Shown here: positions 3,161-59,408 of the stretch, one piece after another
Layout: each line of letters begins with the position of its first letter
How positions within the stretch are numbered: the stretch's first letter is position 1
From: Dicyema japonicum
Taxonomy: Eukaryota > Animalia > Dicyemida
Assembly (NCBI GenBank): GCA_011109175.1
Contig: RDEW01000012.1
Coordinates: 1,277,220-1,341,219 of the forward strand
Length of the DNA stretch: 64,000 nucleotides
Reading direction: 5' to 3'
Made by a program: the position numbers and the translations under genes
The notes under the pieces: generated by a model
What the model saw: only the letters and a program-made list of their open reading frames with translations
What the model was told of the DNA's origin: nothing
The model's database searches: none

Positions 3161-3701
3161 TCAATCTACTTTGGAAAGTAGATAATCAATTAACTCTTGG
3201 GGCCATTTTTCTCTCACGAAATCAAGCGTAAACTTCTCTGCATTTCTTGAATTTTGTCTTTAATTTATTTTTTAAAAATTACAATTTAATGTTAAAATAA
3301 AGCATTCCATCTGTTTTATCAAAAGATAAAATTGAAGAAATATCAGTTTTATTGCGTTTTTTAATTATAGTATCCTTCTTTTTGTAATTCATCGATTTAT
3401 TCGTATTATGACTAGAAAATTATTATTTTGAAACTTAGTATGCAAATTTTCTTTAGTTTTAGATCGTGAAATATTCTTTTTTTCTTCAAATTTAGTAACC
3501 AGGCGGATACAGTTCAAATTACAGAGTGGTTCCCATGTGTTTTCTTTGCTTTGATAAATGTATGTTAAATAAACTACCTTGAATAGCCGACCCATTTAAC
3601 AAGATATCTCTTCTCTCCGTTTTTACTAATTTTTGAATCAATTATATCCTCGACCTCGAATTCATCTTCTTTAGAACACTCTTTTTAGATTTAAATGGCA
3701 T
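3161..3701 (-). pseudogene. HP1/Swi6-like gene copy A; +2-nt insertion in exon 1 (real or sequencing error)
   Basis: Same exon/intron structure as intact copy C, but AGAACACTC replaces AGAACTC (plus strand, ~3673-3681), shifting the frame before the chromodomain. Confidence 0.85.
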
Positions 3702-6700
3702 GATAACAACAACAGACTATACGCTTTAATTGATTTATTTTATTTCAGCATTAAATAATTTTTATTATAAATATTATAATTTTTAAATTAATGTTAACTA
3801 CCATAGAATAATTTTATGTTTCTTAAAAATGATTTACTTTTTTATTAACCTTATGTATTATTCTATGCCTGGTCAAGCGAACGTTATTGTTCTGACATAT
3901 GCGTATTTTATTTAGAATTTCGGTTTCTTTCGTATTTTTGTCCTCTTCCTTTTTCTACTATAGTTGCTTCATGTGATTCAGCTGTCTAGTTTTCGTCCAA
4001 TGTCAGAATGGAAAGAAAAAAAAAGAATTGCTCTCACACATTCGATTCGAGGAATTTTCATAACAACAAAGAATGCAATTATTCAATAGTAGAGTTTTGA
4101 ATCTATTGTATTTTTCTACGTTGGTTATTGATAAGAAAGACACAAGGCAACACAGCTTATTTCATAGTTGTTGTGATAAATTACCTGTAGATAATTTTCA
4201 AGCTTTCTTTGTTATGACCAAATGACGTACATGAAATGACCTGGAGAAAATTAAGTTTCTGAGATTTTTCGCATTTATACATGTTTTAAAAATAATGATG
4301 AAATATCAAACCTAACTCCTAGTATTTTATAATGGTTAATTCCAAGAACAACACCGTTATTTAGAAACAACGTTGATTTCATTTAAATTGAATATTATTA
4401 CTAGTTAAACCGTTATTGAATAATTTTTTTTCATTTTGGTCAATGAAAGTAGATTTTTGTCAATATGTTTTTGCTGGAACATATAAGGAAATAACAATAT
4501 CGTTTTGATGTCTTAACTGATAAATAAAAAGTCCGACACAAGCTGTAATAACTGAGTTATTGTTGTGTTATTTGACGTTCCTGATTTCTGATCTCATTAG
4601 AACCGCTCCGAGGTCCTCATGCAAATTTCGCGGTATATGTCTGACTTGAAACTAGCATCGATAACAAACTTGTTCTTGCTAGCTAATAATAGACAGAATT
4701 CATGGAATAAAGTGGAGACATATAGCTATCGCCTCATAAGATACGACATTTTGAGGCTACGTACGAAAAATATCTTATCTTCGATATGGTACAATTCATA
4801 GGAGCATCATAAACTCTATTAACGAAATCAAACAGAAAATAATTTATGGGAAGAAATAGTCGTTGCTTTTCTACAGAGCTCAGCTCAAATCGGTAATTAA
4901 ATCAAGATGGAGACTCTTTGGCCACGTGTTACGTCTAAATTACTAGGTCCATGCAAATTCAAGTATCCAAATCTTTGTTGTATGTTAGATTTGTGTTGCC
5001 AGATTTTTATTTTATGGTGTTAACCCAAGTGGTCTTGTTTCATGTGAGTGCTTAGACAAGTGTTGTATAACAGTAAGTTGAAAGCATTGCAAAATTGTAT
5101 CAGTGACTCTCCATGAAGGATATGACAATTTCTTCCGTGTGCTCCAATGCACGTTTCCCCTAGTTTGGCTTTTGCAGGCCTGGCGTTCCAGTCCCCGGCT
5201 ACAATAAGAAAGTAAGAAGATGTGAGTTGAGTAAAATGCATCCATCTTATCGAGATTTGTTAAGACTCGTGCTCCGGTAGGGCATATACATTTATAATAC
5301 ACTGAGTTGATTTTATTTCCGCATTTGATTTGCAGCACGGGACACGGTAAGATACTGCCCACATTCTTATAAGACATTTAACTGGTCCTGATAGATCGCA
5401 AATCTGAGACTACAATATCGGCAGGCCTATGAGTGTGTAAAAAGGCGGAATTTGCGAAACAGTTATGTACATTGTACAGTCGCTTTTGGCTCATTTAGAC
5501 AGCATAAAGAGATGTTGTATTTTGTTAGATGCATGACAGTTGATGCTTCTTGTAAGGTTGTTTAAGTCCTCTGCAATAAAAAGTTCCAACAATGAACGGA
5601 GAAATAGGTAAGGAAAACGAAAAAGATATAATGCAATAGAGACGTTTGTCACCCAAATAAGATAATTATTTTAAAGTAGAGTTTTGAATCTTTTACATTT
5701 TTCCAACGTTTGTTATTGATAAGAAGAACACCAGATCGGAAAATCATAGTTCATGGTTTTTCTGATAAATTGTATGTCGATAATCATCGAGCCCTTTTTG
5801 TTATGGCCAAATGAAGTAGCTGGAATGGTCAAGAGATTTTAACCTTCTGAGATTCTTATTGTTCTATGGAGCATACCTAACATAAAATCAGCAAAATCTA
5901 GGAATAGGCATCTTAGTATGATTCCCAGTGGTTATGTAATATTTTTTATAATATAAGTGTTGATTTAATCTACACTTATGGTTTTATAGGACCATATGAA
6001 TAAGTTGCGATTTCGTAAATATAACTTTACTAATAAATTGATTTAATCGAATATATTTGTTGAATCACTTACTTTTTTGAGCATATTACTTTATAAAATA
6101 ATTAAGTTCATAAAATTTACATTAGCTAAACAAAATACCAATTACAGTTACAAACAAAAAACTATTTATTGAGTTAAATTTAAACTATTTGAATTAAAAC
6201 AGTTTTCGCCCTACCAACAGGAAGCATTTGACATGAAGATTTTTAAATACAATATTTGCCTATCTTTATAAAGTTGTAACTTACTTTCCTGCTTTTATGA
6301 CGGTCATGCAAACTGATTCTCATTATCAACTACATACAATCAGGATTACTTAAAAAGAAAAAGTGCTTTACACAATCTATAGAAAATTTATCACAACGAC
6401 AATCACCAACACTTTTCCTGCACGGGGTCCATGTTTATCAATAACGAACCTCAAAAAATACAAGATTCGAGCTTTTTTGAAAGACAATAAACAAATCATG
6501 AGATTTAAAAATTGAATCTCAATGTTGTGCATTCATGTTGAAGGTTTCACATATTTACGATATTGTGGGTTTAACGAGTGACAGCGTAATCAATTAATAA
6601 GTCACTTGCAATCATATTTTCTACGGTGAATCAAATGCTAAATATAGATTAAATAAAAGTAAAAAGTTAAGAACATACGCTAATAACTGTTTTTACTCTA

Positions 6701-6985
6701 ATAATATGTGTGTTCTCGATGAGTGAAGTTATAAATATTATGCCTTTCTCAGAAAACGCTTTGATTTTTATTTGATGTAGGAAAGCAAAGCAAATACTAA
6801 CGATTTCACAAACAAACTCTCATTTCAGAGAATTCAAGAAGGCAATAAGATCACATGAAAATTGGAAAAATTGTTAGTAAATTTCCAATGTTAGGACTTT
6901 TTTGGGCTTCAAATATGGATTAACGAAATAATTGAATAAAAAATCACAACAAATTAAAAAAGTAATAACAACCGACTTAAATAGA

Positions 6986-7523
6986 TCAATCTACTTTGGA
7001 AAGTAGATAATCAATTAACTCTTGGGGCCATTTTTCTCTCACGAAATCAAGCGTAAACTTCTCTGCATTTCTTGAATTTTGTCTTTAATTTATTTTTTAA
7101 AAATTACAATTTAATGTTAAAATAAAGCATTCCATCTGTTTTATCAAAAGATAAAATTGAAGAAATATCAGTTTTATTGCGTTTTTTAAGTATAGTATCC
7201 TTCTTTTTGTAATTCATCGATTTATTCGTATTATGACTAGAAAATTATTATTTTGAAACTTAGTATGCAAATTTCTTTAGTTTTAGATCGTGAAATATTC
7301 TTTTTTTCTTCAAATTTAGTAACCAGGCGGATACAGTTCAAATTACAGAGTGGTTCCCATGTGTTTTCTTTGCTTTGATAAATGTATGTTAAATAAACTA
7401 CCTTGAATAGCCGACCCATTTAACAAGATATCTCTTCTCTCCGTTTTTACTAATTTTTGAATCAATTATATCCTCGACCTCGAATTCATCTTCTTTAGAA
7501 CTCTTTTTAGATTTAAATGGCAT
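6986..7523 (-). pseudogene. HP1/Swi6-like gene copy B; 1-nt deletion in the hinge (exon 2)
   Basis: Exon 1 and chromodomain intact. KTKEICIL replaces KTKDNLHT, shifting the frame before the chromoshadow domain. Confidence 0.85.
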
Positions 7524-10500
7524 GATAACAACAACAGACTTTACGCTTTAATTGATTTATTTTATTTCAGCATTAAATAATTTTTATTATAAATATTATA
7601 ATTTTTAAATTAATGTTAACTACCATAGAATAATTTTATGTTTCTTAAAAATGATTTACTTTTTTATTAACCTTATGTATTATTATATGCCGGGTCGAGC
7701 GAATGTTATTGTTCTGACATATGCGTATTTTATTTAGAATTTCAGTTTCATTCGTATTTCTGTCCTTTTCCTTTTTCTACTATAGTTGCTTCATGTGATT
7801 CAACTGTGTAGTTTTCGTCCAATTTCAGAATGGAAAGAAAAAAAAAGAATTGCTCTCACACATTCGATTCGATGAATTTTCATAACGACAAATAATGAAT
7901 TTATTCAATAGTAGAGTTTTGAATTTATTGTATTTTTCTACGTTGGTTATTGATAATGAAGAAACAAGGCAACACAGCTTATTTCATAGTTGTTGTGATA
8001 AATTACCTGTAGATAATTTTCAAGCTTTTTTTGTTATGAGCAAATGACGTACATGAAATGACCTGGAGAAAATTAAGTTGCTGAGATTTTTCGCTTTTAT
8101 ACATGTTTTAAAAATAATGATGAAATATCAAACCTAACTCCTAGTATTTTATAATGGTTAATTCCAAGCACAACACCGTTCTTTAGAAACAACGTTGATT
8201 TCATTTAACTTTAATATTATTACTAGTTATAACGTTATTGAATAATTTTTTTTCATTTTGGTCATGAAAGTAGATTTTTGTCAATATGTTTTTGCTGGAA
8301 CATTCAAGGCAATAACAATATCGTTTGATGTCTTAACTGATAAATAAAAAGTCCGACACAAGACCTAATAACTGAGTTATTGTTGTGGTATTTGATGTTC
8401 CTGATTTCTGATCTCATTGGAACCGCTCGGAAGTCCTCATGCAAATTTAGAGGTTTATGTCTCACTTGAAACTAGCATCGATAACAAACTTGTTTTTGCT
8501 AGCTAATAATAGACAGAATTCATGGAATAAATTGGAATCATATCGCTATCACCTCATAAGATACGACATTTAGAGGCTACGTACGAAAAATATCTTATTT
8601 TCGATATGGTACAATTCAGAGGAGCATCATAAACTCTATTAACGAAATCAAACAAAAAATAATTTATGGGAAAAATAGTCGTTGCTCTTTCAACAGAGCT
8701 CAGCTCAAATCGGTAATTAAATCAAGATGGAGACTCTTTGGCCACGTGTTACGTCTAAATTACTAGGTCCATGCAAATTCAAGTATCCAAATCTGTTGTA
8801 TGTTAGATTTGTGTTGCCAGATTTTTATTTTATGTGTTAACCCAAGTGCTCTTGTTTCATGTGAGTGCTTAGACAAGTGTTGTATAACAGTAAGTTGAAA
8901 GCATTGCAAAATTGTATCAGTGACTCTCCATGAAGGATATGACAATTTCTTCCGTGTGCTCCAATGCACGTTTCCCCTAGTTTGGCTTTTGCAGGCCTGG
9001 CGTTCCAGTCCCCGGCTACAATAAGAAAGTAAGAAGATGTAGTTGAGTAAAATGCATCCATCTTATCGAGATTTGTTAAGACTCGTGCTCCGGTAGGGCA
9101 TATACATTTATAATACACTGAGTTGATTTTATTTCCGCATTTGATTTGCAGCACGGGACACGGTAAGATACTGCCCACATTCTTATAAGACATTTAACTG
9201 GTCCTGATAGATCGCAAATCTGAGACTACAATATCGGCAGGCCTATGAGTGTGTAAAAAGGCGGAATTTGCGAAACAGTTATGTACATTGTACAGTCGCT
9301 TTTGGCTCATTTAGACAGCATAAAGAGATGTTGTATTTTGTTAGATGCATGACAGTTGATGCTTCTTGTAAGGTTGTTTAAGTCCTCTGCAATAAAAAGT
9401 TCCAACAATGAACGGAGAAATAGGTAAGGAAAACGAAAAAGATATAATGCAATAGAGACGTTTGTCACCCAAATAAGATAAATATTTTAAAGTAGAGTTT
9501 TGAATCTTTTACATTTTTCCAACGTTTGTTATTGATAAGAAGAACACCAGACCGGAAAATCATAGTTCATGGTTTTTCTGATAAATTGTATGTCGATAAT
9601 CATCGAGCCCTGTTTGTTATGGCCAAATGAAGTAGCTGGAATGGTCAAGAGATTTTAACCTTCTGAGATTCTTATTGTTCTATGGAGCATACCTAACATA
9701 AAATCAGCAAAATCTCGGAATAGGCATCTTAGTATGATTTCCAGTGGTAATGTAATATTTTTTATAATATAAGTGTTGATTTAATCTTCACTTATGGTGT
9801 TATAGGACCATATGAATAAGTTGCGATTTCGTAAATATAACTTTACTAATAAATTGATTTAATCGAATATATTTGTTGAATCACTTACTTTTTTGAGCAT
9901 ATTACTTTATAAAATAATTAAGTTCATAAAATTTACATTAGCTAAACAAAAAACCAATTACAGTTACAAACAAAAAACTATTTATTGAGTTAAATTTAAA
10001 CTATTTGAATTAAAACAGTTTTCGCCCTACCAACAAGAAGCTTTTGACATGAAGATTTTTAAATACAATATTTTCCTATCTTTATAAAGTTGTAACTTAC
10101 TTTCCTTTCTTTTATGACGGTCATGCAAACTGATTCTCATTATCAACTATATACAATCAGGATTACTTAAAAAGAAAAAGTGCTTTACACAATCTATAGA
10201 AAATTTATCACAACGACAATCATCAACACTTTTCCTGCACGGGGTCCATGTTTATCAATAACGATCCTCAAAAAATACAAGATTCGAGCTTTTTTGGAAG
10301 ACAATAAACAAATCATGGATTTAAAGGTTGAATCTCAATGTTGTGCATTCTTGTTGACAGTTTCACATATTTACGATATTGTGGGTTTAACGAGTGACAG
10401 CGTAATCAATTAATACATCACTTGCAATCATACTTTCTACGGTTAATCAAATGCTAAATATAGATTAAATAAAAGTAAAAAGTTAAGAACATACGCTAAT

Positions 10501-10801
10501 AACTGTTTTTACTCTAATAATATGTGTGTTCTCGATGAGTGAAGTTATAAATATTATCCCTTTCTCAGAAAACGCGTTGATTTTTATTTGATGCAGGAAA
10601 GCAAAACAAATACTAACGATTTCACAAACAAACTCTCATTTCAGAGAATTCAAGAAGGCAATAAGATCACATGAAAATTGGAAAAATTGTTAGTAAATTT
10701 CCAATGTTAGGACTTTTTTGGGCTTCAAATATGGATTAACGAAATCATTGAATAAAAAATCACAACAAATTAAAAAAGTAATAACAACCGACTTAAATAG
10801 A

Positions 10802-11340
10802 TCAATCTACTTTCGAAAGTAGATAATCAATTAACTCTTGGGGCCATTTTTCTCTCACGAAATCAAGCGTAAACTTCTCTGCATTTCTTGAATTTTGTCT
10901 TTAATTTATTTTTTTAAAATTACAATTTAATGTTAAAATAAAGCATTCCATCTGTTTTATCAAAAGATAAAATTGAAGAAATATCAGTTTTATTGCGTTT
11001 TTTAAGTATAGTATCCTTCTTTTTGTAATTCATCGATTTATTCGTATTATGACTAGAAAATTATTATTTTAAAACTTAGTATGCAAATTGTCTTTAGTTT
11101 TAGATCGTGAAATATTCTTTTTTTCTTCAAATTTAGTAACCAGGCGGATACAGTTCAAATTACAGAGTGGTTCCCATGTGTTTTCTTTGCTTTGATAAAT
11201 GTATGTTAAATACACTACCTTGAATAGCCGACCCATTTAACAAGATATCTCTTCTCTCCGTTTTTACTAATTTTTGAATCAATTATATCCTCGACCTCGA
11301 ATTCATCTTCTTTAGAACTCTTTTTAGATTTAAATGGCAT
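10802..11340 (-). CDS. HP1/Swi6-like chromodomain + chromoshadow protein, copy C, intact, 153 aa, introns of 29, 23 and 25 nt
   Basis: Spliced translation: MPFKSKKSSKEDEFEVEDIIDSKISKNGEKRYLVKWVGYSSKENTWEPLCNLNCIRLVTKFEEKK...TDISSILSFDKTDGMLYFNIKLQNSRNAEKFTLDFVREKWPQELIDYLLSKVD*. Aromatic cage F/W/Y and ENTWEP motif present; the C-terminal ...KWPQ.LI.Y resembles a chromoshadow domain. 539-77=462 nt, in frame. Confidence 0.9.
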
Positions 11341-14300
11341 GATAACAACAACAGACTTTACGCTTTAATTGATTTATTTTATTTCAGCATTAAATAATTT
11401 TTATTATAAATATTATAATTTTTAAATTAATGTTAACTACCATAGAATAATTTTATGTTTCTTAAAAATGATTTACTTTTTTATTAACCTTATGTATTAT
11501 TCTATGCCTGGTCAAGCGAACGTTATTGTTCTGACATATGCGTATTTTATTTAGAATTTCGGTTTCTTTCGTATTTTTGTCCTCTTCCTTTTTCTACTAT
11601 AGTTGCTTCATGTGATTCAGCTGTCTAGTTTTCGTCCAATGTCAGAATGGAAAGAAAAAAAAGAATTGCTCTCACACATTCGATTCGAGGAATTTTCATA
11701 ACAACAAAGAATGCAATTATTCAATAGTAGAGTTTTGAATCTATTGTATTTTTCTACGTTGGTTATTGATAAGAAAGACACAAGGCAACACAGCTTATTT
11801 CATAGTTGTTGTGATAAATTACCTGTAGATAATTTTCAAGCTTTCTTTGTTATGACCAAATGACGTACATGAAATGACCTGGAGAAAATTAAGTTTCTGA
11901 GATTTTTCGCATTTATACATGTTTTAAAAATAATGATGAAATATCAAACCTAACTCCTAGTATTTTATAATGGTTAATTCCAAGAACAACACCGTTATTT
12001 AGAAACAACGTTGATTTCATTTAAATTGAATATTATTACTAGTTAAACCGTTATTGAATAATTTTTTTTCATTTTGGTCAATGAAAGTAGATTTTGTCAA
12101 TATGTTTTTGCTGGAACATATAAAAATAACAATATCGTTTTGATGTCTTAACTGATAAATAAAAAGTCCGACACAAGCTGTAATAACTGAGTTATTGTTG
12201 TGTTATTTGACGTTCCTGATTTCTGATCTCATTAGAACCGCTCCGAGGTCCTCATGCAAATTTCGCGGTATATGTCTGACTTGAAACTAGCATCGATAAC
12301 AAACTTGTTCTTGCTAGCTAATAATAGACAGAATTCATGGAATAAAGTGGAGACATATAGCTATCGCCTCATAAGATACGACATTTTGAGGCTACGTACG
12401 AAAAATATCTTATCTTCGATATGGTACAATTCATAGGAGCATCATAAACTCTATTAACGAAATCAAACAGAAAATAATTTATGGGAAGAAATAGTCGTTG
12501 CTTTTTCTACAGAGCTCAGCTCAAATCGGTAATTAAATCAAGATGGAGACTCTTTGGCCACGTGTTACGTCTAAATTACTAGGTCCATGCAAATTCAAGT
12601 ATCCAAATCTTTGTTGTATGTTAGATTTGTGTTGCCAGATTTTTATTTTATGGTGTTAACCCAAGTGGTCTTGTTTCATGTGAGTGCTTAGACAAGTGTT
12701 GTATAACAGTAAGTTGAAAGCATTGCAAAATTGTATCAGTGACTCTCCATGAAGGATATGACAATTTCTTCCGTGTGCTCCAATGCACGTTTCCCCTAGT
12801 TTGGCTTTTGCAGGCCTGGCGTTCCAGTCCCCGGCTACAATAAGAAAGTAAGAAGATGTGAGTTGAGTAAAATGCATCCATCTTATCGAGATTTGTTAAG
12901 ACTCGTGCTCCGGTAGGGCATATACATTTATAATACACTGAGTTGATTTTATTTCCGCATTTGATTTGCAGCACGGGACACGGTAAGATACTGCCCACAT
13001 TCTTATAAGACATTTAACTGGTCCTGATAGATCGCAAATCTGAGACTACAATATCGGCAGGCCTATGAGTGTGTAAAAAGGCGGAATTTGCGAAACAGTT
13101 ATGTACATTGTACAGTCGCTTTTGGCTCATTTAGACAGCATAAAGAGATGTTGTATTTTGTTAGATGCATGACAGTTGATGCTTCTTGTAAGGTTGTTTA
13201 AGTCCTCTGCAATAAAAAGTTCCAACAATGAACGGAGAAATAGGTAAGGAAAACGAAAAAGATATAATGCAATAGAGACGTTTGTCACCCAAATAAGATA
13301 ATTATTTTAAAGTAGAGTTTTGAATCTTTTACATTTTTCCAACGTTTGTTATTGATAAGAAGAACACCAGACCGGAAAATCATAGTTCATGGTTTTTCTG
13401 ATAAATTGTATGTCGATAATCATCGAGCCCTTTGTTATGGCCAAATGAAGTAGCTGGAATGGTCAAGAGATTTTAACCTTCTGAGATTCTTATTGTTCTA
13501 TGGAGCATACCTAACATAAAATCAGCAAAATCTCGGAATAGGCATCTTAGTAACCCAGTGGTTATGTAATATTTTTTATAATATAAGTGTTGATTTAATA
13601 CACTTATGGTTTATAGGACCATATGAATAAGTTGCGATTTCGTAAATATAACTTTACTAATAATTGATTTAATCGAATATATTTGTTGAATCACTTACTT
13701 TTTTGAGCATATTACTTTATAAAATAATTAAGTTCATAAAATTTACATTAGCTAAACAAAATACCAATTACAGTTACAAACAAAAAACTATTTATTGAGT
13801 TAAATTTAAACTATTTGAATTAAAACAGTTTTCGCCCTACCAACAGGAAGCATTTGACATGAAGATTTTTAAATACAATATTTGCCTATCTTTATAAAGT
13901 TGTAACTTACTTTCCTGGCTTTTATGACGGTCATGAAAACTGATTCTCATTATCAACTACATACAATCAGGATTACTTAAAAAGAAAAAGTGCTTTACAC
14001 AATCTATAGAAAATTTATCACAACGACAATCACCAACACTTTTCCTGCACGGGGTCCATGTTTATCAATAACGAACCTCAAAAATTACAAGATTCGAGCT
14101 TTTTTGGAAGACAATAAACAAATCATGGGATTTAAAGGTTGAATCTCAATGTTGTGCATTCTTGTTGAAGGTTTCACATATTTACGATATTGTGGGTTTA
14201 ACGAGTGACAGCGTAATCAATTAATACATCACTTGCAATCATATTTTCTACGGTGAATCAAATGCTAAATATAGATTAAATAAAAGTAAAAAGTTAAGAA

Positions 14301-14612
14301 CATACGCTAATAACTGTTTTTACTCTAATAATATGTGTGTTCTCGATGAGTGAAGTTATAAATATTATCCCTTTCTCAGAAAACGCGTTGATTTTTATTT
14401 GATGCAGGAAAGCAAAACAAATACTAACGATTTCACAAACAAACTCTCATTTCAGAGAATTCAAGAAGGCAATAAGATCACATGAAAATTGGAAAAATTG
14501 TTAGTAAATTTCCAATGTTAGGACTTTTTTGGGCTTCAAATATGGATTAACGAAATCATTGAATAAAAAATCACAACAAATTAAAAAAGTAATAACAACC
14601 GACTTAAATAGA

Positions 14613-15151
14613 TCAATCTACTTTCGAAAGTAGATAATCAATTAACTCTTGGGGCCATTTTTCTCTCACGAAATCAAGCGTAAACTTCTCTGCATTTCTT
14701 GAATTTTGTCTTTAATTTATTTTTTAAAAATTACAATTTAATGTTAAAATAAAGCATTCCATCTGTTTTATCAAAAGATAAAATTGAAGAAATATCAGTT
14801 TTATTGCGTTTTTTAAGTATAGTATCCTTCTTTTTGTAATTCATCGATTTATTCGTATTATGACTAGAAAATTATTATTTTGAAACTTAGTATGCAAATT
14901 GTCTTTAGTTTTAGATCGTGAAATATTCTTTTTTTCTTCAAATTTAGTAACCAGGCGGATACAGTTCAAATTACAGAGTGGTTCCCATGTGTTTTCTTTG
15001 CTTTGATAAATGTATGTTAAATAAACTACCTTGAATAGCCGACCCATTTAACAAGATATCTCTTCTCTCCGTTTTTACTAATTTTTGAATCAATTATATC
15101 CTCGACCTCGAATTCATCTTCTTTAGAACTCTTTTTAGATTTAAATGGCAT
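14613..15151 (-). CDS. HP1/Swi6-like protein, copy D, intact, 153 aa
   Basis: Same length (539 nt) and GT-AG introns (29, 23, 25 nt) as copy C; open after splicing. Confidence 0.9.
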
Positions 15152-16149
15152 GATAACAACAACAGACTTTACGCTTTAATTGATTTATTTTATTTCAGCA
15201 TTAAATAATTTTTATTATAAATATTATAATTTTTAAATTAATGTTAACTACCATAGAATAATTTTATGTTTCTTAATAAATGATTTACTTTTTTATTAAC
15301 CTTATGTATTATTCTATGCCGGTCAAGCGAACGTTATTGTTCTGACATATGCGTATTTTATTTAGAATTTCGGTTTCTTTCGTATTTTTGTCCTCTTCCT
15401 TTTTCTACTATAGTTGCTTCATGTGATTCAGCTGTCTAGTTTTCGTCCAATGTCAGAATGGAAAGAAAAAAAAAGAATTGCTCTCACACATTCGATTCGA
15501 GGAATTTTCATAACAACAAAGAATGCAATTATTCAATAGTAGAGTTTTGAATCTATTGTATTTTTCTACGTTGGTTATTGATAAGAAAGACACAAGGCAA
15601 CACAGCTTATTTCATAGTTGTTGTGATAAATTACCTGTAGATAATTTTCAAGCTTTCTTTGTTATGACCAAATGACGTACATGAAATGACCTGGAGAAAA
15701 TTAAGTTTCTGAGATTTTTCGCATTTATACATGTTTTAAAAATAATGATGAAATATCAAACCTAACTCCTAGTATTTTATAATGGTTAATTCCAAGAACA
15801 ACACCGTTATTTAGAAACAACGTTGATTTCATTTAAATTGAATATTATTACTAGTTAAACGTTATTGAATAATTTTTTTCATTTTGGTCATGAAAGTAGA
15901 TTTTTGTCAATATGTTTTTGCTGGAACATTAAGGAAATAACAATATCGTTTTGATGTCTTAACTGATAAATAAAAAGTCCGACACAAGCTGTAATAACTG
16001 AGTTATTGTTGTGTTATTTGACGTTCCTGATTTCTGATCTCATTAGAACCGCTCGAGGTCCTCATGCAAATTTCGCGGTATATGTCTGACTTGAAACTAG
16101 CATCGATAACAAACTTGTTTTGCTAGCTAATAATAGACAGAATTTATGG

Positions 16150-20994: not shown

Positions 20995-21070
20995 TAGCGG
21001 CTGCTCTGACTGCGTAGCTATTCCCTTTCAGGATAACGAGCGAGATTCGATCAAATAAACAGCAGGTAAT
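20995..21070 (-). mobile_element. Very short 3' tip of a second CRE-like family (other copies ~28135-28320, ~32390-32455, ~40370-40455)
   Basis: Family reads DPRE..WLFERISLAI.RG.SHAVRA*; the longest copy (28135-28320) extends to PLAMENSG. Confidence 0.65.
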
Positions 21071-25140: not shown

Positions 25141-25189
25141 TATGATAATGGACTAGTAAATGTGAAGGCGTTGTCGAATTACAATATAA

Positions 25190-42185: not shown

Positions 42186-42197
42186 AAATTTTAAATA

Positions 42198-46960: not shown

Positions 46961-47029
46961 ATGATCAACCAATTAACAAAATTATGTTGGAATCAACTAC
47001 ATATGCTTTACAGATTTCAAATCTAATTG

Positions 47030-48870
47030 GAATTGTAGTAAGTCCTCATGCAAAATTCGCAGTCATATGGCTGAATTGACGATAGTATCGATAACAAACT
47101 TGTTCTTGCTTCCTAATACTAGACAGAATTAATGGAAAACAGTTGAAACATAAAGCTATAGTCTCATAAAATACGAAGCGGAGAGGCTACATACGAAGAA
47201 TCTACTAATCTTCGATTTAGGACAATTTAGAGGAACAGCATCATCTCCATTAACGAAATCAACCATGAAAAAAATATGGGAGGAAATAGTCGTTGCTCCT
47301 TTCACAAAACTCTGCTCAAATCGGTAATCAAGATCAACTAGCCTATGATGATCTTTAATCCAATTTTATAATAAATGCAAATCCGTTATACTGTTAGATG
47401 ATTTTTTTTCAAATCAAGATGGAGCCTCTTTGCTATGAGTTACATCTAAATGACTAGGTCTCCGCAAATTCACTCCGCCATATCTCTTGTTGATATTAGT
47501 TTTGTGTTATCCGATTTGTATTTTCTGGTCCCAATCCAAAGTGTTCTTGTGTCTTGCAAGTGATTATAAAAATTATTGTATAAAAGTAAGTTGAACGGCG
47601 TGCAAAATTGTAACAGCGAATCAACAGTATGGTTTCGACAATTTCTTCCGTGTGTTCCAATGCATGTTTCCCTTGGTTTGACTTTCGAGCACTGGCGTTC
47701 CAGTCCGCGGCGAAAAGAAGATAAAAGGGCGTGAGAGTAAAGTAAATGCGTCCAGCTCTTCTAAATTTGTTAAGATTCTCGCTCCGGTAGGGGCACATAC
47801 ATTTATAATGGACTAGGTTGAATTTTTTATCCATATTTGAATTGCAGTACTGCGACACGGTCTGTTTCTGTTCACACCCTTATAAGACAGTTTAAGGTCC
47901 TAATGGATTGGAAATCTGAGATTATAAGGTCGGCAGGCAGATGAGAAGGTAAAAATGTGAAATTTGCCTACAGTTCTATACATTTTGAGTCATTTTTGGC
48001 TCATATAGACAGCATAAAAAATGTTGTATTTTGTCAGATGCATGACAGTTGCTGCTTTTGTAAGGTTGTTTAAGTCTTTTGCAATTAAAAGTTCCAAGAG
48101 TGAACAGAGAAATCGGTAAGGAATACTAATAAGATATAGTGCAATATAAACGTCGTCATTCAAAAAAAGAGATAATTATTTTAGAGTAGAGTTTTGAATT
48201 TTTCATATTTTTTCCGAAGTTTGTTATTGATAAGATGGTCACCAGTCAGGAAAAGCATAGTTCATGGTTTTTCTAAAATTCGTATGTTGATTATCATCAA
48301 GCCCTCTTTGTTATGACTAAATGTCGAATCTGGAATTGTTAAGAATTTGATTATCTTAGATTTTTTGATACATTCATGTTTTGAAAATGACAATGAAATA
48401 TCTAATCTCACTCCCAGAATTTTAGAGTGGTTAGTTCCAAAATAGATCTTTATTTAAAAAAAAGTTAATTCCATTTTGAGTGAACGTTGAGTAACGAAAG
48501 AGTTAGGACTTAAGTCCCTTAATACTGAGGGTGAGATTAGAAACTTAGAAGTAAAACGTGATTACATTGATAATTTGGTCAATCAGAGAAGATATTTTGT
48601 CAATATGTTCTTGCAGTTCCGTATGAGGAAGTTCCGGTTTCGTTAATATCACTTTTTTTAAAAAGGTTTACTATTTAGGATATATAATTAAATCACTTAG
48701 TTTTCGCCCTACCTTTAGGAAACTTTTGGACAAGAAGATTTTTAATATAAAGTTTTTCTATCTTAGTAATGTTGGAACTTACTTTTCTTACTTTTTAGAC
48801 AATCTTACAAACTGATTCTCATTATCAATAAAATACAAACTGGAATTACTTAAAATAATGCTTTACAAAA
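47030..48870. repeat. Older, diverged version of the array unit (LINE-relic part); 47030-47900 is nearly identical to 55720-56590
   Basis: Same order of jockey relic, RTE-APE relic and second/third jockey relics as the 3.8-kb unit, with many substitutions. Confidence 0.8.
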
Positions 48871-48872
48871 TT

Positions 48873-51800
48873 TATAGAAAATTTATCACAACGACAATCA
48901 CCAACACTTTTCCTGCACAAGGTCCATGTTTATCAATAACGAACATAAAAAATTACAAGATTCGAGCTTTTTTGGAAGACAATAAACAAATCATGTGATT
49001 TAAAGGTTGAATCTCGATGTTGTGCATTCTTGTTGAAGGTTTCACATATTTACGATATTGTGGGTTTAACGAGTGACAGCGTAATCAATTAATACGTCAC
49101 TTGCAATCATATTTTCTACGGTGAATCAAATGCTAAATATAGATTAAATAAAAGTAAAAAGTTAAGAACATACGCTAATAACCGTTTTTACTCTAAAAAT
49201 ATGTGTGTTCTCGATGAGTGAAGTTATAAATATTATGCCTTTCTCTGAAAACGCTTTGATTTTTATTTGATGTATGAAAGCAAAGCAAATACTAACGATT
49301 TCACAAACAAACTCTCATTTCAGAGTAAATTCAAGAAGGCAATAAGATCACATGAAAATTGGAAAAATTGTTAGTAAATTTCCAATGTTAGGACTTTTTT
49401 GGGCTTCAAATATGGATTAACGAAATAATTGAATAAAAAATCACAACAAATTAAAAAAGTAATAACAACCGACTTAAATAGATCAATCTACTTTGGAAAG
49501 TAGATAATCAATTAACTCTTGGGGCCATTTTTCTCTCACGAAATCAAGCGTAAACTTCTCTGCATTTCTTGAATTTTGTCTTTAATTTATTTTTTAAAAA
49601 TTACAATTTAATGTTAAAATAAAGCATTCCATCTGTTTTATCAAAAGATAAAATTGAAGAAATATCAGTTTTATTGCGTTTTTTAAGTATAGTATCCTTC
49701 TTTTTGTAATTCATCGATTTATTCGTATTATGACTAGAAAATTATTATTTTGAAACTTAGTATGCAAATTGTCTTTAGTTTTAGATCGTGAAATATTCTT
49801 TTTTTCTTCAAATTTAGTAACCAGGCGGATACAGTTCAAATTACAGAGTGGTTCCCATGTGTTTTCTTTGCTTTGATAAATGTATGTTAAATAAACTACC
49901 TTGAATAGCCGACCCATTTAACAAGATATCTCTTCTCTCCGTTTTTACTAATTTTTGAATCAATTATATCCTCGACCTCGAATTCATCTTCTTTAGAACT
50001 CTTTTTAGATTTAAATGGCATGATAACAACAACAGACTTTACGCTTTAATTGATTTATTTTATTTCAGCATTAAATAATTTTTATTATAAATATTATAAT
50101 TTTTAAATTAATGTTAACTACCATAGAATAATTTTATGTTTCTTAATAAATGATTTACTTTTTTATTAACCTTATGTATTATTCTATGCCGGTCAAGCGA
50201 ACGTTATTGTTCTGACATATGCGTATTTTATTTAGAATTTCGGTTTCTTTCGTATTTTTGTCCTCTTCCTTTTTCTACTATAGTTGCTTCATGTGATTCA
50301 GCTGTCTAGTTTTCGTCCAATGTCAGAATGGAAAGAAAAAAAAAGAATTGCTCTCACACATTCGATTCGAGGAATTTTCATAACAACAAAGAATGCAATT
50401 ATTCAATAGTAGAGTTTTGAATCTATTGTATTTTTCTACGTTGGTTATTGATAAGAAAGACACAAGGCAACACAGCTTATTTCATAGTTGTTGTGATAAA
50501 TTACCTGTAGATAATTTTCAAGCTTTCTTTGTTATGACCAAATGACGTACATGAAATGACCTGGAGAAAATTAAGTTTCTGAGATTTTTCGCATTTATAC
50601 ATGTTTTAAAAATAATGATGAAATATCAAACCTAACTCCTAGTATTTTATAATGGTTAATTCCAAGAACAACACCGTTATTTAGAAACAACGTTGATTTC
50701 ATTTAAATTGAATATTATTACTAGTTAAACGTTATTGAATAATTTTTTTCATTTTGGTCATGAAAGTAGATTTTTGTCAATATGTTTTTGCTGGAACATT
50801 AAGGAAATAACAATATCGTTTTGATGTCTTAACTGATAAATAAAAAGTCCGACACAAGCTGTAATAACTGAGTTATTGTTGTGTTATTTGACGTTCCTGA
50901 TTTCTGATCTCATTAGAACCGCTCGAGGTCCTCATGCAAATTTCGCGGTATATGTCTGACTTGAAACTAGCATCGATAACAAACTTGTTTTGCTAGCTAA
51001 TAATAGACAGAATTTATGGAATACAGTTGAAACTCAAACACAGATACCTTGTTGATTATGAACATACAATTTATCAAAAAATCATAAGCTTTGCTGTTCC
51101 CCGTTATCTTATCAATAACAACTATAGCAAAAATAATTGAAATACTTGTCATTAATGTGTTTCTTTGATACACCAGAGAATTTTACGGATGTCCTGAAAA
51201 GTTTTCTTCTCCCAGACAACTTTCAAAAATATCAGCTGTTCATGCAGAACACTTATCTTTTTGTTAAAATTGTATATGCACCTCAACTATTTTTCAACTT
51301 TACGTGGGATTCTCAGAGGACTCGTTATCCCCGGTCCTTTTTGTTGTATACCTTGAACCTACACTAAAAATATGCAAGCCCTTGGTTAGAAAATTTATGA
51401 CAATACATTTTATGCTGACGATCTAGACTTTTTTCTGAAGATACTAAATAGTTTTTATCCGTAAATCCCGACGTAACTAAGTTTCAATGATTACACGAAG
51501 TGTCCGGAGCTCGAACTAGTCATGGAGTTGGCGTGCTTCTAGGAGACTGTGAAGATATTATTCGTAGGAATATTTTTGACCAAATTTTGTGAGTACTATG
51601 GATGAGACTCTACATTGTTTTGCTTGGCCGATTATCTCTTGAGATTCTAAAGCCGCTGTCGTTTCTTATATAAAGCGTTAATCGGTGTCTGAATTGTTTG
51701 TACCTAGAATTTCTTAAAAGACATAATACAAGCGACTCAAATGACGATAGATTTTTTACTTAAAGCAGTCAATATAAAATAGAAGACCGAAGCAAAAAAA

Positions 51801-53737
51801 TTGGACATCGAGAGCCCAACATTCCGGAATTCTTAAAGGAGACTTGTAACTTCTAGATCTAATCAGATGTAGTTAATTTGAAAAGATCCGATCGTAGTGT
51901 TATCACTGAGATGAAAGTTCAAAATGATTTTTGGATGCTGCTCGAGAGTATTAAAGGGATTTATCAATAGAATCTTGTGCCCGTTATTGACTATTGATCT
52001 GATAAACTCAATTACTAGGGCAACCAATTACAATAAATTGCAATTAAAAATAATTTAATAAAAGTGCTATAATTTTTTTCTGGTATAGTTAAAAAACGTG
52101 CTATAATTTTTTCTGGTATGGGTAAAAAGACTATTTTTTTATATTTTTATAGTAATTAATTATCAACAATTAAACAAATATCAGTTGAGGAAGCCTGTTG
52201 CGTGGATTGCGAACGAGTTCCCTCAGAGTATGGCTATTCCAATCTTTTGTCTTAGCCATAACCCTTCTAGTTGATCCCTTTCTTTCTGGCATGCAATCTT
52301 CCGAGTTCTCTGCAAGAACTCAGCCGTCATTGGAACAACAGTTCCCGATGATTCGGTCGCAACAGGAGTAAATCGGTAGCGAAAAGACTATTTAAAAGAA
52401 AATTTCTTTTTATGCAAAAAAATTCCCAGAGTTTGTTATTAACGGAGAGGGGAATTTATTATGTTCCAGTTGTTCGACTGTTGTACGATGTGACAAAATA
52501 CTTTTTGTAGACTCACATCGTTCTACAAAAAGACATTTGAAAGGGCACAGTATTTATCTGAGTTTAAAATTATAGAAGAGTCCAACCTATCTCAGAGTTT
52601 ACAAACATTCATTTCCAAGATAACGATACTCGAAAATCTCGGGCTATGAAAGTAACAGAAGCATTTTTGGAGGCAAACATCCCAGTTTACTAATAGAAAA
52701 ACCTTTCTCTCATACGCCTTTTTGAAGATGAAACATATCATTTGCCACCCGAAATCAACGTGTAGGTCAAATATAAAAAAATCTCAAAATGTAAATTAGA
52801 TACTATTCAGAATCAATTAATGTTATTTTTTGAAGTTATTTAATAGTGGGAAATATGTTTTTCTAGTTCGTGATGAAACTCAAATCAACGGAACTCGCTT
52901 TTTAACTACTCTGAAATGGAAAATCTCCGCTCCGAAAAATCTTCATTTTATATCGTGAGCAACATACATTTTCCGCATATCATTTCAAGTAATTGTGTTA
53001 AAGTTGATGAAAACAATGAAAATATTTTCAATTGAACGTGAAAAGTTCGTCTTATTCGTCACAGATGGCAAAAGATATATGACAAGTGGTAGGAATAAAT
53101 CTAAATTTAGCTAGGACATCAATGAAATTTTTATATCCAAATCTTTTGCACGTCACTTGTGATTTATATCTGTTACATAATTGTTCTCTAAGAATCCTAC
53201 TTCACAGATGTTGATAACCTGATTTCTTATGTAAAAAAATCACGGTGAAGAACAAAAGAATCTAAGAAATGTTCTCACAAATAGGAAATCTAGGGGAAGT
53301 TGCTGTCACAAGATGAGGAGGCTGGCAAAAAGCAGCCAAATATTACGCTCAGAATCTTTCAGATATTAGTAAATTATTCTCTGAAATTGAAGGAATGGTG
53401 TTTTGATCAAAAATGTTTCGATTCTAAATTGTTTTAGGGCAAAGAATTAGTTAATATTCCCACGTTGCTTTCAAGTTTAATCGAAATCAGTTAAAACTAT
53501 TTGTTTTTGATTGGAATAATTTAAAACACCCATCTACTCAATAATTCAATTGAAAAATCTTATGCCGAACTGAACATCATAGAATTTTAATCAGATCGGT
53601 GCAATATAGAAAATTAAATATCAAAAACGCTTAGAAATCACGGATTCTAAGTAATCTAGATTTCTCAAATAAAAATCGCCAGCAATTATTCATACCTCCG
53701 AAATTCTAGCGGGAGCTCATCCTCTGTTAAAAGGGAG
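48873..53737 (+). repeat. 4.87-kb near-identical duplicate of ~14005-18867 (offset 34870), ending at the N at 53738
   Basis: Identical ORFs at 14841/49711 and 16267/51137; includes the array edge, RTE piece and hAT with its CRE insert; a few SNPs near both ends. Confidence 0.95.
49483..50021 (-). CDS. HP1/Swi6-like copy G, intact (inside the 4.87-kb duplicate; may be an assembly copy of D)
   Basis: 539 nt, same structure as D; one synonymous difference (TCC vs TCG) near the stop. Confidence 0.75.
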
Positions 53738-53738
53738 N

Positions 53739-56590
53739 CATACAATCTATATACGACAATCAACAACACCTTTCTTTGGCAGGGTCTACATTTATCAAAA
53801 CAAACCTCAATAAATTCAAGATTCGATACTTTCTAGGAAGACAAAAAAATAATGGGATTTATAGGTTGAATCTCGATGTAGTTTATTATGGTTGAAAGTT
53901 TATTATAAAACGATAAGATGTCATAACTTGTTTTACACTAATAATAGGTGTGTTCTGCATGTGTGAAGTTATAAATATTTTGGCTTCCTGTGAAATCGAT
54001 TTGTTTTTTATTTGATATTGTAATGATAACTCACATTCTCATATCTTAATTAACAAAAGTTATTTCAACAGTAGGAAAGAAAAAACACTAACGATTTTCC
54101 AACACACTCTCATCTCAGAGTATATTCAATAAGGCAGTAAGATCACATGAAAATTAAAAAAATTGTTAGTAAATTTCCAATGTAGAGATGTATGGATTCA
54201 AATATGGATTAACAAAATAATTGAATAAAAAATCACAACCAATGAAAAAAGTAATAATAACCGACTTAACTAGATTAATCTACTTTAGAAAGTAGATAAT
54301 CAATTAATTCTTGGGGCCATTTTTCTCTCACAAAATCAAGCGTAAACTTCTCTGCATTTTTTGAATTTCGTCTTTTTATTTATTTAAAAAATACAATTTA
54401 ATGTTAAAATAAGGCATTCCATCTGTTTTATCAAAAGATAAAATTGAAGAAATATCAGTTTTATTGCGTTTTTTAAGTATACTATCTTTCTTTTTGTAAT
54501 TCTTCAATTTCTTCGTATTATTACTATAAAAATTATTATTTTGTAACTTAATGTGCAAATTGTCTTTAGTTTTAGACCGTGAAATATTCCTTTTATCTTC
54601 AAATTTAGTAACAAGGCGGATGCAGTTCAAATTACAGAGTGGTTCCCATGTGTTTTCTTTGCTTTGATAAATATATTTAACATTAAACTACCTTGAATAA
54701 CCGACCCATTTAACAAGATATTTCTTCTCTCCGTTTTTACTAATTTTTGAATCAATTATTTCCTCGACCTCGAATTCAACATCTTTTTTAGAACTCATTT
54801 TAGATTTAAATGGCATGATAACAACAACAGACTTTACGTTTTAATTGATTTATTTTATTTCAGCTTAAATTATTTATTATTAATATTATAATTTTTAAAT
54901 TAATGTTAACTACCATAGTATAATTTTATGTTTCTTAAAAAATGATTTATCTTATTTATTAACCCTATGTATTAGTCTATGCCGCATGGAGAGAACGTTA
55001 TTGTTGTGCCATATGCGTATTTTATTAAGAATTTCGGTTTCTTTAGTATGTTTCTCCACTCTTTTTTCTACTATAGTTGCTTCATGTAATTCAACTGTGT
55101 AGTTTTCGTCCAATGTCTGAATGGCAAGAAAAAAAGAAGACTTGCTCTCACACATTTGATTCAAGAAATTTTAATAACAAGGAATCTAATTATTCTATAG
55201 TAGGGTTTTGAATCTATTGTATTTTTTCTATGTTTGTCATTGATACGCATGATACCAGGCAGCAACAGCATTGTTCATCGTTGTTCTGATAAATTTCCTG
55301 TAGATAATTATCAAGCTCTCTTTGTTATGACCAAATGATGTACTTGGAATGACCTGGTGAAATTTGAGTTGCTGAGATTTTTCGCATATATACATGTTTT
55401 GGAAATGAAATGAAGTATCAAACATAACTCCCAGTATATTAGGATGGTTAATTCTAAGAACTACATCGTTATTTAGAAACAACGTTGATTTCATTTTAAA
55501 TTAAAGATGGTTCCTAGTTAAACCATTATTGATTAACTTTAGATTTTGGTCCATACAAAAGATATTTTGTCAATATGTTTTTGCTGGATCATATGAGGCA
55601 ATAACAATATCGTCTTTATTTCTTAACCGATATATAAAAAGTTCAAGACAAGCCTCAATAACGGAGTTATTGCTGTCAAATTTGTGGCTTCCGATTTCAT
55701 ATCTAATTGGAATTGTAGGAAGTCCTCATGCAAAATTCGCAGTCATATGGCTGAATTGACGATAGCATCGATAACAAACTTGTTCTTGCTTCCTAATACT
55801 AGACAGAATTAATGGAAAACAGTGGAAACATAAAGCTATCGTCTCATAAAATACGAAGCGGAGAGGCTACATACGAAGAATCTACTAATCTTCGATTTAG
55901 GACAATTTAGAGGAACAGCATCATCTCCATTAACGAAATCAACCATGAAAAAAATATGGGAGGAAATAGTCGTTGCTCCTTTCACAAAACTCTGCTCAAA
56001 TCGGTAATCAAGATCAACTAGCCTATGATGATCTTTAATCCAATTTTTATAATAAATGCAAATCCGTATACTGTTAGATGATTTTTTTTCAAATCAAGAT
56101 GGAGCTCTTTGCTATGAGTTACATCTAAATGACTAGGTCTCCGCAAATTCACTCCGCCATATCTCTTGTTGATATTAGTTTTGTGTTATAAGATTTGTAT
56201 TTTCTGGTCCCAACCCAAGTGTTCTTGTGTCTTGCAAGTGATTATAAAATTATTGTATAAAAGTAAGTTAAACGGCGTGCAAAATTGTAACAGCGAATCA
56301 AACAGTATGGTTTCTACAATTTCTTCCGTGTGTTCCAATGCATGTTTCCCTTGGTTTGGCTTTCGAGCACTGGCGTTCCAGTCCGCGGCGAAAAAAAGAT
56401 AAAAGGGCGTGAGAGTAAAGTAAATGCGTCCAGCTCTTCTAAATTTGTTAAGATTCTCGCTCCGGTAGGGGCACATACATTTATAATGGACTAGGTTGAA
56501 TTTTTTATCCATATTTGAATTGCAGTACTGCGACACGATCTGTTTCTGTTCACACCCTTATAAGACAGTTTACAGGTCCTAATGGATTGG
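53739..56590. repeat. Diverged (older) copy of the HP1+LINE-relic unit; 54270-55720 is an inverted homolog of ~34330-35790
   Basis: Same component order as the array unit around HP1 copy H. Confidence 0.8.
54275..54816 (-). CDS. HP1/Swi6-like copy H, intact, 154 aa, introns of 30, 24 and 23 nt
   Basis: MPFKSKMSSKKDVEFEVEEIIDSKISKNGEKKYLVKWVGYSSKENTWEPLCNLNC...FTLDFVREKWPQELIDYLLSKVD*; 542-77=465 nt. Confidence 0.9.
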
Positions 56591-56810
56591 AAATTATTAT
56601 TATATTCCTTTGTTTTTAATTGTAGGAATAACTTTTTGTTGTTCTCGATTAAATCATATTTGGTCAAGTAATAAGAAAAGTGCGGGAACCTATAAGATTC
56701 TGTGCGAAATGATACTAATTTTTAAAAATGTTGAAAAGTTCATTTCTATATATTAGACAAAAATAAGAAACAGTTTATCTCATTCATCAGTCGATTCGAC
56801 AGAATATAAA

Positions 56811-57599: not shown

Positions 57600-58720
57600 T
57601 ATTTATTTAGTTTATTTAATAACCCCGAAAAGGGAACACCGAGAAAGAAAGAGGAAACCAACAAATTAAGTGATCCCGGTACGCCTCAATAGGATCGAGA
57701 GGTTTTTCCTATGTTCCTCCAGAGTACCCACGGCTTTCCTGTATAAACGACGAGCGTTTTTCACTAGTTTGAAGAGGGGTGGGTTTTTTCCCCAAAATAC
57801 GTGTATTTAAGGCTTCTAGCCTTGAATGGAAAAAACGACTTGTTTCTTGACCACACAGACCGATGAAGCCGGTGCCGTTATTTTTGATTGCGGCATTGGG
57901 GGGAAAGATCGGGGGTAGATTTGTTAGACGTGCAAGTTTGCCTGTTAGGGAGTTGATCTTGTATGATTGGAAATTGAAGCTCCATAGGCCCATGAGGCAC
58001 AAGCATACTCTACCGTTGGTTTTAGAAGTTGATTATACATGACGACAGCACATACCCGTGACGGCCTGGACTTTAAAAGGGGTTTCATTATATTCAGTTT
58101 CCTGAGACCCTTTTTCATAACGTTCTTCATATGTTAGAAAATGTCATCTAAGGGTGAAAGTCACTCCCAGAATAGTTGGATGAATCTGTAAAGGGAAAGA
58201 GTCTCCATATATGTTCAAATCCAGCGTATATATTTCTTTTCTGTCTGTGGTGAAGATGGTATACGTTAATTTATCCCTGGATATGGAGAGACGATTCAAA
58301 TTCAATCAGGCTCCCAGGTCGTCAATATGTTATTGAAGCTCTGATTTTGCCATATCCACGTATTTGTTCTTGCTAGCGATAATTAAGTTGTCAGATTTGT
58401 GAGAAGAATTTAATCTCGTCCTCCAGGACATGGTAATTCGTTTAGGAATAAATTAAATAACGCCGGAGAGAGAGGCGTTCCTTGAGAGACGCCAATTGGT
58501 AGAAGACGGGACCTCGATCTTGAGTGCTCTATACAGATACGTCCTCTTCTTCTGTAAAGAAATTGGCTATCCATCTATTCAAAGTCGGCTGAATGGTGGT
58601 GTCAAAAACCTTTTCGTGAGTAATGTTCTCGGGACAGATTCGAACGCCTTCTGGATGTCCAGGGAGACCAATATTGTCGGTAGATGGCGTTTCGGTTCGT
58701 TGAACCCTTCTCATAATTAA
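57600..58720 (-). mobile_element. Jockey/I-like LINE RT to 3' end, decayed
   Basis: TILVSLDIQKAFESVP...RWIANFF...GVSQGT.LS...MYNQLLKPTVEYACASW; ends in an A-rich tail. Confidence 0.8.
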
Positions 58721-58866
58721 AATAGAGACTAATATTTTTTGTGAGAAATTAACATTAATTAAAAAATTATTATATTAAAATTAATAAATAAATAAATTAT
58801 ATTATAAATAAAAATAATTTAATCTTGCAATAAAATAAAAAAAACGTAAAGTGTTTTGTCGTTGCC

Positions 58867-59408
58867 ATGCCATTTAAATCTAAAAAGAATTCTAAAGAAG
58901 ATTTTGAGTATCAGGTCGAAGATATTATCGATTCCAAAGTTATTAAAAATGGAGAGAAGATATATCTTGTTAAATGGGAAGGTTATTCAAGGTAGTTAAG
59001 TGTTAAAAATATTTATAAAAGCAAAGAAAACACTTGGGAACCACTCTCTAATTTGAATTGCATTCGTCTAATTACTAAATTTGAAATTAAAAAGAATATT
59101 TCACGATCTAAAACTAAATACAATTTTCCTATCAAGTTACAAAATAATTATTTTTGTAGAAATTCCACGAACGAAACCAATAATTATAAAGGATGATACT
59201 ATACTTGATAAACGTAATAAAACTGATATTTCTTCAATTTTATCTTTTGATAAAAAAGACGGAATCCTTTATTTTAACATTAAATTGTATTTTTTTTAAT
59301 AAAATTAAAGACGAAATTATGAGAAATGCACAGAAGTTTACACTAGATTTTGTAAGAGAAAAATGGCCACAAGAATTAATTGATTATCTACTTTCTAAAG
59401 TTGATTGA
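58867..59408 (+). pseudogene. HP1/Swi6-like copy I (EGYS subfamily); 2-nt deletion in an A-run of exon 3
   Basis: Chromodomain intact (EYQVEDIID...YLVKWEGYS|SKENTWEP). TATAAAGGATGA versus TATAAAAAGGATGA gives an early stop. Confidence 0.85.

Follow-up and report, generated by a model that had tools for sequence, protein, structure and literature searches.

Gene copies and their structure

The stretch of Dicyema japonicum DNA analysed here (64,000 nucleotides (nt) of contig RDEW01000012.1, positions 1,277,220 to 1,341,219, hereafter the window) carries nine full-length copies of a small gene, termed mini-HP1, whose spliced product is predicted to be an HP1-class protein. The copies, identified by a six-frame motif search followed by aligned gene models, were found at the places and on both strands as a first-pass annotation of the window had claimed, seven of them lying on the minus strand and the other two on the plus. 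All nine share the start ATG of a gene that, when intact, codes for 153 or 154 amino acids (aa). As had also been proposed, each is interrupted by very short introns, three per copy, all of them GT..AG and 29-30, 23-24 and 23-25 nt long. The copies fall into two subfamilies named after a chromodomain motif, KWVGYS (A, B, C, D, G, and H) and KWEGYS (E, F, and I), and are distributed as follows:

Copy A, 3701-3161, minus strand: KWV group; frameshifted in the assembly by 2 nt inserted near codon 9
Copy B, 7523-6986, minus strand: KWV group; frameshifted in the assembly by 1 nt missing from the hinge
Copy C, 11340-10802, minus strand: KWV group; intact, 153 aa; introns at 11190-11218, 11053-11075, and 10899-10923
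Copy D, 15151-14613, minus strand: KWV group; intact, 153 aa; introns at 15001-15029, 14864-14886, and 14710-14734
Copy E, 35244-35787, plus strand: KWE group; a T run in the hinge has gained 1 nt; KWPQ motif with W>L
Copy F, 38582-38040, minus strand: KWE group; intact, 154 aa
Copy G, 50021-49483, minus strand: KWV group; intact, 153 aa; inside a 5-kb segmental duplicate
Copy H, 54816-54275, minus strand: KWV group, older lineage; intact, 154 aa; in a diverged whole unit
Copy I, 58867-59408, plus strand: KWE group; 2 nt missing from the hinge, 1 nt inserted in the last exon

After removal of the three introns, copies C, D, and G yield identical proteins of 153 aa, and F and H yield proteins of 154 aa. 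These five copies are therefore intact, as previously described, and A, B, and E each carry a single indel as expected; the same had been said of copy I, which in fact has two. The division into KWVGYS and KWEGYS groups, the F/Y-W-Y aromatic cage, the ENTWEP motif, the common C-terminus, and the restriction of the W>L change to copy E all agreed with the earlier description. The hinge intron of the array copies deserves mention, as it measures 23 nt, begins with a weak GTT 5' end, and has to be removed for the frame to be kept. In all nine copies the stop codon, TGA or TAA, falls at an equal codon position, indicating that the standard genetic code applies. We also considered a ciliate code in which TAA and TAG are read as Gln. 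It opens frames everywhere in AT-rich DNA and is uninformative, whereas the common stop codon supports the standard code.

In addition, tblastn of the spliced proteins against the window revealed three older, partial relics of the gene:

37779-37874, plus strand: hinge/chromoshadow fragment; E 0.055; blastn to the unit matches at 37811-37888
59630-59752, plus strand: hinge/chromoshadow fragment; E 3e-6
60527-60729, plus strand: chromoshadow fragment in two pieces; E 6e-6; 23-nt gap at the place of intron 3

Domain organisation of the predicted protein

The predicted protein consists of a chromodomain (approximately residues 12-64), a hinge (approximately 65-103), and a chromoshadow part (approximately 104-153). 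The Pfam Chromo profile (PF00385) matched exon 1 over profile positions 1-27 with 34.1 bits (cut-off 25.1) and exon 2 over positions 29-53 with 15.7-19.9 bits. Since the two matches abut on the profile, removing intron 1 restores one complete domain. When the spliced 57-residue chromodomain was searched against the sequences of the PDB with HMMER, the best solved match was human CBX5/HP1alpha (50.9 bits, E 9e-13), followed by CDY1, fly HP1a, CBX1, Clr4, Chp1, and Rhino (41.5 bits for the latter), and Polycomb CBX proteins scored lower. The aromatic cage residues F/Y14, W36, and Y39 align with Y, W, and F of CBX5 and are conserved in every copy, position 14 being Y in F and I and otherwise F. 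With these residues present, the chromodomain should read methylated H3K9.

The hinge is about 40 residues long and basic, with SRSKTK and KKK..KKR patches. Downstream of it, the spliced C-terminal 55 residues matched Pfam Chromo_shadow (PF01393) across intron 3, with E values from 6e-4 to 8e-5 and scores of 22.7 bits for C, D, and G, 23.0 for F, and 20.2 for H (cut-off 22.4). The HP1 layout that had been proposed for these genes is thus present in the expected order of chromodomain, basic hinge, and chromoshadow, the Pfam call being clear for the first domain and at threshold for the last. The end of the protein directly follows the last helix. A literature search on conserved HP1 intron positions returned nothing usable.

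Array structure and mode of duplication

Two further features, detected by blastn, describe how the copies are embedded in repeated DNA:

1-16157, minus strand: tandem array of a ~3816-bp unit, 4.2 units; 96-99% identity in blastn of one unit
47013-48348, minus strand: LINE-relic part of the unit in its H-type form, beside copy G; 97.8% identical to 55693-56594

The array is arranged head-to-tail with a repeat period of 3811-3825 base pairs (bp), and leaves the window at its left edge. Each full unit comprises one HP1-like gene, about 1 kb of upstream DNA, an internal repeat of ~190 bp, and a decayed relic of an endonuclease of the long interspersed nuclear element (LINE) type, represented by an open frame at 12656-12877 (Exo_endo_phos_2, E 0.024, under the cut-off). 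The ~190-bp direct repeat, at 11715-11904 and 13300-13488 and at the corresponding sites of every 3.8-kb unit, occurs twice per unit, with the two copies 1585 bp apart and 75% identical. It was ruled out as a dispersed short interspersed nuclear element, since it is present only within units, and the pair may reflect an older period of shorter length.

The right end of the array was found a second time in the window. The segment 13827-18867, which contains the last 2.3 kb of the array and 2.7 kb of its flank, recurs at 48699-53737 with 98.6% identity and includes copy G. Next to it, copy H occupies a complete unit that has diverged (53753-56594; 76-87% identity to the array unit), and its synonymous divergence (dS) from C, D, and G is 0.11. 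Together with the H-type piece beside G, this diverged unit indicates that the region from 47 to 56.6 kb is an older array of the 3.8-kb unit. Within this region, the LINE-relic parts at 47013-47915 and 55693-56594 are 97.8% identical and the adjoining G and H gene regions only ~87%, which points to mosaic exchange between units. A repeat of ~310 bp (81% identity), probably a dispersed element, was also noted in the array flank (18114-18420), in its duplicate (52984-53290), and near the right end of the window (62291-62597).

The remaining copies share much less sequence with the others. For F and I, homology with other copies reaches beyond the gene by only about 90 bp on the upstream side and 130 bp on the downstream side. 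E and F lie tail to tail as an inverted pair. Copy E is a recombinant in which three copy types are joined, resembling H in its upstream region and exon 1 (92-97%), F from +129 to +540 (95-100%), and I in its 3' flank (94-100%).

Such gene-sized homology in F and I is what a small mobile module would leave behind, and a mobile element that spreads the gene, or a gene that shapes the chromatin of its own repeat, could also be read from the LINE-type relic in every unit and from the presence of copies on both strands. However, all three introns are kept, which makes retroposition unlikely, and the borders of F, I, and E, when searched for terminal inverted repeats, target-site duplications, and poly-A tails, showed none of these. 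Retained introns and borders of this kind argue against both retroposition and an obvious transposon vehicle. In addition, the LINE relic is decayed, with Pfam matches below threshold, and the array is head-to-tail and includes non-coding DNA, as unequal crossing-over predicts. We therefore regard a selfish or transposon-borne cassette as a very improbable source of the copies. Instead, copying took place at the DNA level, as had been suggested before, because the duplicated stretches include the introns and kilobases of non-coding flank, and it was accompanied by recombination between copies.

Read depth and assembly quality

The sequencing runs found belong to one 2019 sample, apart from a single 2017 run with the same species label, and none of them is labelled as RNA. 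Contigs of four of these runs were placed on 10700-16699, which contains copies C and D and the flank. These contigs cover genes and spacers alike and lack splice joints, so that the four runs behave as DNA. In all four, word depth was about 2-5 times as high in the contigs of the unit as in the flank contig (16090-16699), a ratio that is not a copy number. Per run, the values for unit and flank were 139-202 and 42.5, 2010-2788 and ~630, 10.7-15.4 and 4.6, and 145-282 and 62-69. The raised depth indicates that the unit is multi-copy in the reads too.

The same contigs revealed problems in the assembly. The third unit has private deletions of 1-2 nt after positions 12123, 13598, 13610, and 13661, all of which are contradicted by every Illumina-type contig of the four runs. 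These deletions are likely errors of the long-read assembly, and similar errors may affect reading frames elsewhere in the genome. Given such unsupported private indels in the array, the frameshifts of A, B, E, and I may likewise be long-read assembly errors.

Unit-private deletions of this kind, and the placement of D and G in 5-kb segments that are 98.6% identical, could raise the suspicion that a single or low-copy gene was multiplied by long-read mis-assembly or by uncollapsed haplotypes. The depth of the unit contigs in the four runs runs counter to this, as do the real substitutions between units (50 segregating sites in 900 bp). Moreover, the exons of H, E, F, and I are 5-14% off those of the array, which cannot be assembly noise. 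An assembly artefact is thus extremely improbable as the origin of the multiple copies.

Sequence constraint on the copies

We estimated selection from the ratio of nonsynonymous to synonymous differences per site (pN/pS) according to Nei and Gojobori (NG86). Between the two subfamilies, represented by D and F, pS was 0.32 and pN 0.095, giving a ratio of 0.30 (Fisher p 5.5e-7). By region, the chromodomain had a ratio of 0.23, the chromoshadow part 0.15, and the hinge 0.67. Across between-subfamily comparisons, values ranged from 0.15 to 0.25 in both domains. The hinge, with ratios of 0.5 to 0.67, is the least constrained part. Consistently, D and H differ by 5.4% in exons, 13.3% in introns, and 14.8% in the upstream DNA (-111 to -1000).

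A similar contrast was seen within the array, where segregating sites numbered 2/461 in exons, 3/77 in introns, and 50/900 in upstream DNA (exons versus upstream, p ~1e-6). Array exons thus vary about 12-fold less than upstream DNA and about 9-fold less than introns, and the three private substitutions of copy C are all intronic. Exons 3 and 4, which lie 3' of the hinge intron, had 2/226 segregating sites (p 0.001). Constraint on exons located behind this frame-critical 23-nt intron supports the spliced frame of the array copies. Judging from these substitution patterns, the family is under purifying selection and not drifting. The comparison of substitution rates proposed in the first-pass annotation therefore came out with a ratio well under 1 between subfamilies and exons diverging less than flanks, and the proposed comparison of read depth with more than one copy. 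None of the outcomes that it had named as speaking against its interpretation was observed among those that could be checked.

The situation is less clear for the KWE group, in which pN/pS was 0.5-0.6 and not significantly under 1, a value that fits the broken states of E and I. This leads to the question of whether the gene is a mere passenger of a 3.8-kb unit that spread neutrally, with most copies dead or dying, at most one or two (F and H) working, and no meaning in terms of dosage. Apart from the KWE-group ratio, such a scenario would account for the frameshifts in four of the nine copies, for the three further copies that are relics, and for the fact that array copies stay in frame only if a hinge intron of 23 nt, weak at its GTT 5' end, is removed; nor were transcripts seen, as the four runs behave as DNA. 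It does not explain why array exons, including those past the hinge intron, vary so much less than upstream DNA and introns, or why the proteins of C, D, and G are identical. Besides, the private 1-2-nt indels of the array are unsupported by Illumina-type contigs, and the frameshifts may be assembly errors. On balance, we consider passenger amplification unlikely.

Proposed origin and possible function of the cluster

Taken together, the data are best explained by a lineage-specific cluster of compact HP1-type genes that has grown by repeated DNA-level duplication and is subject to birth-and-death evolution, an explanation in which we have good though not full confidence. According to this model, an old unit of ~3.8 kb, comprising the gene, its upstream DNA, and the LINE relic, would have been tandemly duplicated and split into the H and the C/D/G lineages. 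Gene-sized pieces would then have been copied nearby in both orientations, giving rise to E, F, and I, and copies would have swapped sequence by ectopic recombination, as exemplified by E. In the latest step, unequal crossing-over would have expanded the C/D/G-type unit to a near-identical array, the end of which would have been duplicated once more to produce G.

With regard to function, the chromodomain would read methylated H3K9, the KKK/KKR patches of the hinge would bind nucleic acid, and the divergent chromoshadow domain would dimerise. In combination, the three parts would bridge and compact H3K9-methylated chromatin. While the analysis establishes the domain content, the copying at DNA level, the recombination, and the purifying selection, it is by inference that histone binding, dimerisation, and expression are assigned to the protein and its genes. 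Likewise, the amplification may have served the dosage or the diversification of heterochromatin readers in a repeat-rich genome. A motive such as a response against transposable elements (TEs) or the interests of a selfish cassette would be speculation.

Several observations weigh against the interpretation of the locus as a cluster of working HP1-type genes. The chromoshadow call is marginal, copy H falling under the Pfam cut-off, and a PDB sequence search with the spliced C-terminus retrieved no chromoshadow chain. Its sole match was Tapirin (E 0.83), which we judged to be due to chance. The ungapped pairwise score to the chromoshadow domain of CBX5/HP1alpha was not above that of shuffled sequence, although the register was as expected and, in this alignment scoring at shuffle level, placed an Ile at the position of the interface Ile. 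In HP1beta, W170 holds PxVxL partners, and in this register the present protein would end one residue before that position. With an 88-aa piece as query, an exhaustive HMMER search of 1.84 billion representative proteins turned up no close relative. Only distant multi-chromodomain proteins matched, the best of them (56.6 bits) over the chromodomain alone, and phmmer against these proteins likewise confirmed just the chromodomain. A word-indexed protein search with the 88-aa piece of H found nothing. The family is accordingly either unannotated or lineage-restricted, and orthologs give no information on its function. Furthermore, four of the nine copies (A, B, E, and I) are frameshifted as assembled, and the transcription and splicing of the copies are predictions, the four runs placed on the window being DNA with no splice joints. 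Finally, the block of low diversity in the array extends about 100 bp beyond the gene at both ends, suggesting that part of the contrast between exons and upstream DNA could be due to local gene conversion.

A more adventurous possibility comes from the biology of the host. Chromatin elimination and circular DNA have been reported for the somatic cells of dicyemids (PMC6543705). By analogy, the extra HP1-type readers might be part of a machinery that marks chromatin for the programmed elimination, circular-DNA formation, and selective amplification described in these cells, and the 3.8-kb tandem array itself could be a product of such selective amplification. We consider this highly unlikely; if true, it would provide an animal counterpart of the chromodomain proteins in ciliate DNA elimination. 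The Pdd1p-type proteins of ciliates are similar in being chromodomain readers, in their case marking DNA for programmed elimination, but they are unrelated to mini-HP1 beyond the chromodomain, and the link is an idea only.

Comparison with known HP1 proteins

Compared with the canonical HP1 proteins of animals (CBX5, CBX1, CBX3, and Drosophila HP1a), mini-HP1 shows the same order of chromodomain, basic hinge, and chromoshadow, its cage residues align, and CBX5 is its best solved match. In contrast, mini-HP1 is about 40 residues shorter, its chromoshadow part is recognisable only by profile at threshold, it has no C-terminal extension past the last helix, and it is encoded by multiple copies in a tandem array.

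Flies already provide examples of HP1 family growth. Recurrent, young, and lineage-restricted HP1 amplifications in which functional residues are kept have been described in Diptera (Helleu and Levine 2018, PMC6188558; Levine et al. 2012, PMC3380853). The same authors expected that tandem duplicates would surface as assemblies improve. Germline-biased expression and positive selection have been reported for the fly genes. The cluster described here resembles these cases in being a recurrent and young lineage-specific amplification of HP1 genes, but it is found in a micro-intron parasite and not in an insect, and it includes a near-identical array copied together with non-coding DNA. As to Rhino and HP1D2, the Drosophila paralogs tied to PIWI-interacting RNA clusters and drive, the Rhino chromodomain is among the good PDB matches, and the first-pass annotation had taken such young paralogs, with a role in genome-defence conflicts, as its model. 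We saw no sign of conflict-type evolution here, the domains being under purifying selection between subfamilies. The mini-HP1 cluster is therefore a new instance of a known phenomenon, in a very different animal, with an unusually small protein and a very young array.

Nearly all work on the lineage-specific growth of HP1 families concerns flies, in which such growth is tied to fast-changing heterochromatin and to germline conflicts. A second amplification that is both independent and very recent would mean that the phenomenon is not peculiar to insects. Within animals, introns shorter than 30 nt have been reported only in myxobolid myxozoans and D. japonicum (PMC13644364), so that the host belongs to one of only two such lineages, and it combines them with the repeat-rich, strongly reduced genome of a parasite. 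For D. japonicum, 49% repeats were reported, from a genome sequenced with a paired-end library, four Nextera mate-pair libraries, and PacBio (PMC6736024). The runs used here fit this design, as the 2019 sample is represented by one large and several small DNA libraries, one of which has a loose end recognisable as a Nextera adaptor. The lack of close relatives in public protein sets is probably explained by micro-introns defeating gene finders, and for such genomes the counts of chromatin genes may therefore be too low. At 153 aa, the protein is also a compact and tractable object for tests.

Other features of the window

The locus had been described as lying in TE-dense chromatin. Decayed repeats are indeed present, but the endonuclease matches are all sub-threshold. 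A Pfam search with 20 of the longest open frames outside the genes returned sub-threshold matches only (Exo_endo_phos_2, PD-(D/E)XK-type nucleases, and Ig_3), so that a TE-dense setting cannot be documented by protein domains. No transfer RNA genes were found in the window, and the only Rfam match was a full-length 5S ribosomal RNA (RF00001, 91 bits) at 33186-33304 on the minus strand, between the array and copy E.

Two arms of an inverted repeat, each ~880 bp long and 93.8% identical to the other, were detected at 19148-20023 and 26011-26890, separated by about 6 kb. The interval between them is richer in G+C (0.38 at 24-28 kb) and contains an open frame on the plus strand (25506-25778) with weak PD-(D/E)XK matches. 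The whole region (19148-26890) may be a large element with long inverted ends. Finally, an open frame on the minus strand (45411-45689) showed a weak match to Ig_3 (E 3e-4, under the cut-off), and may represent the exon of a host gene that is split by micro-introns.

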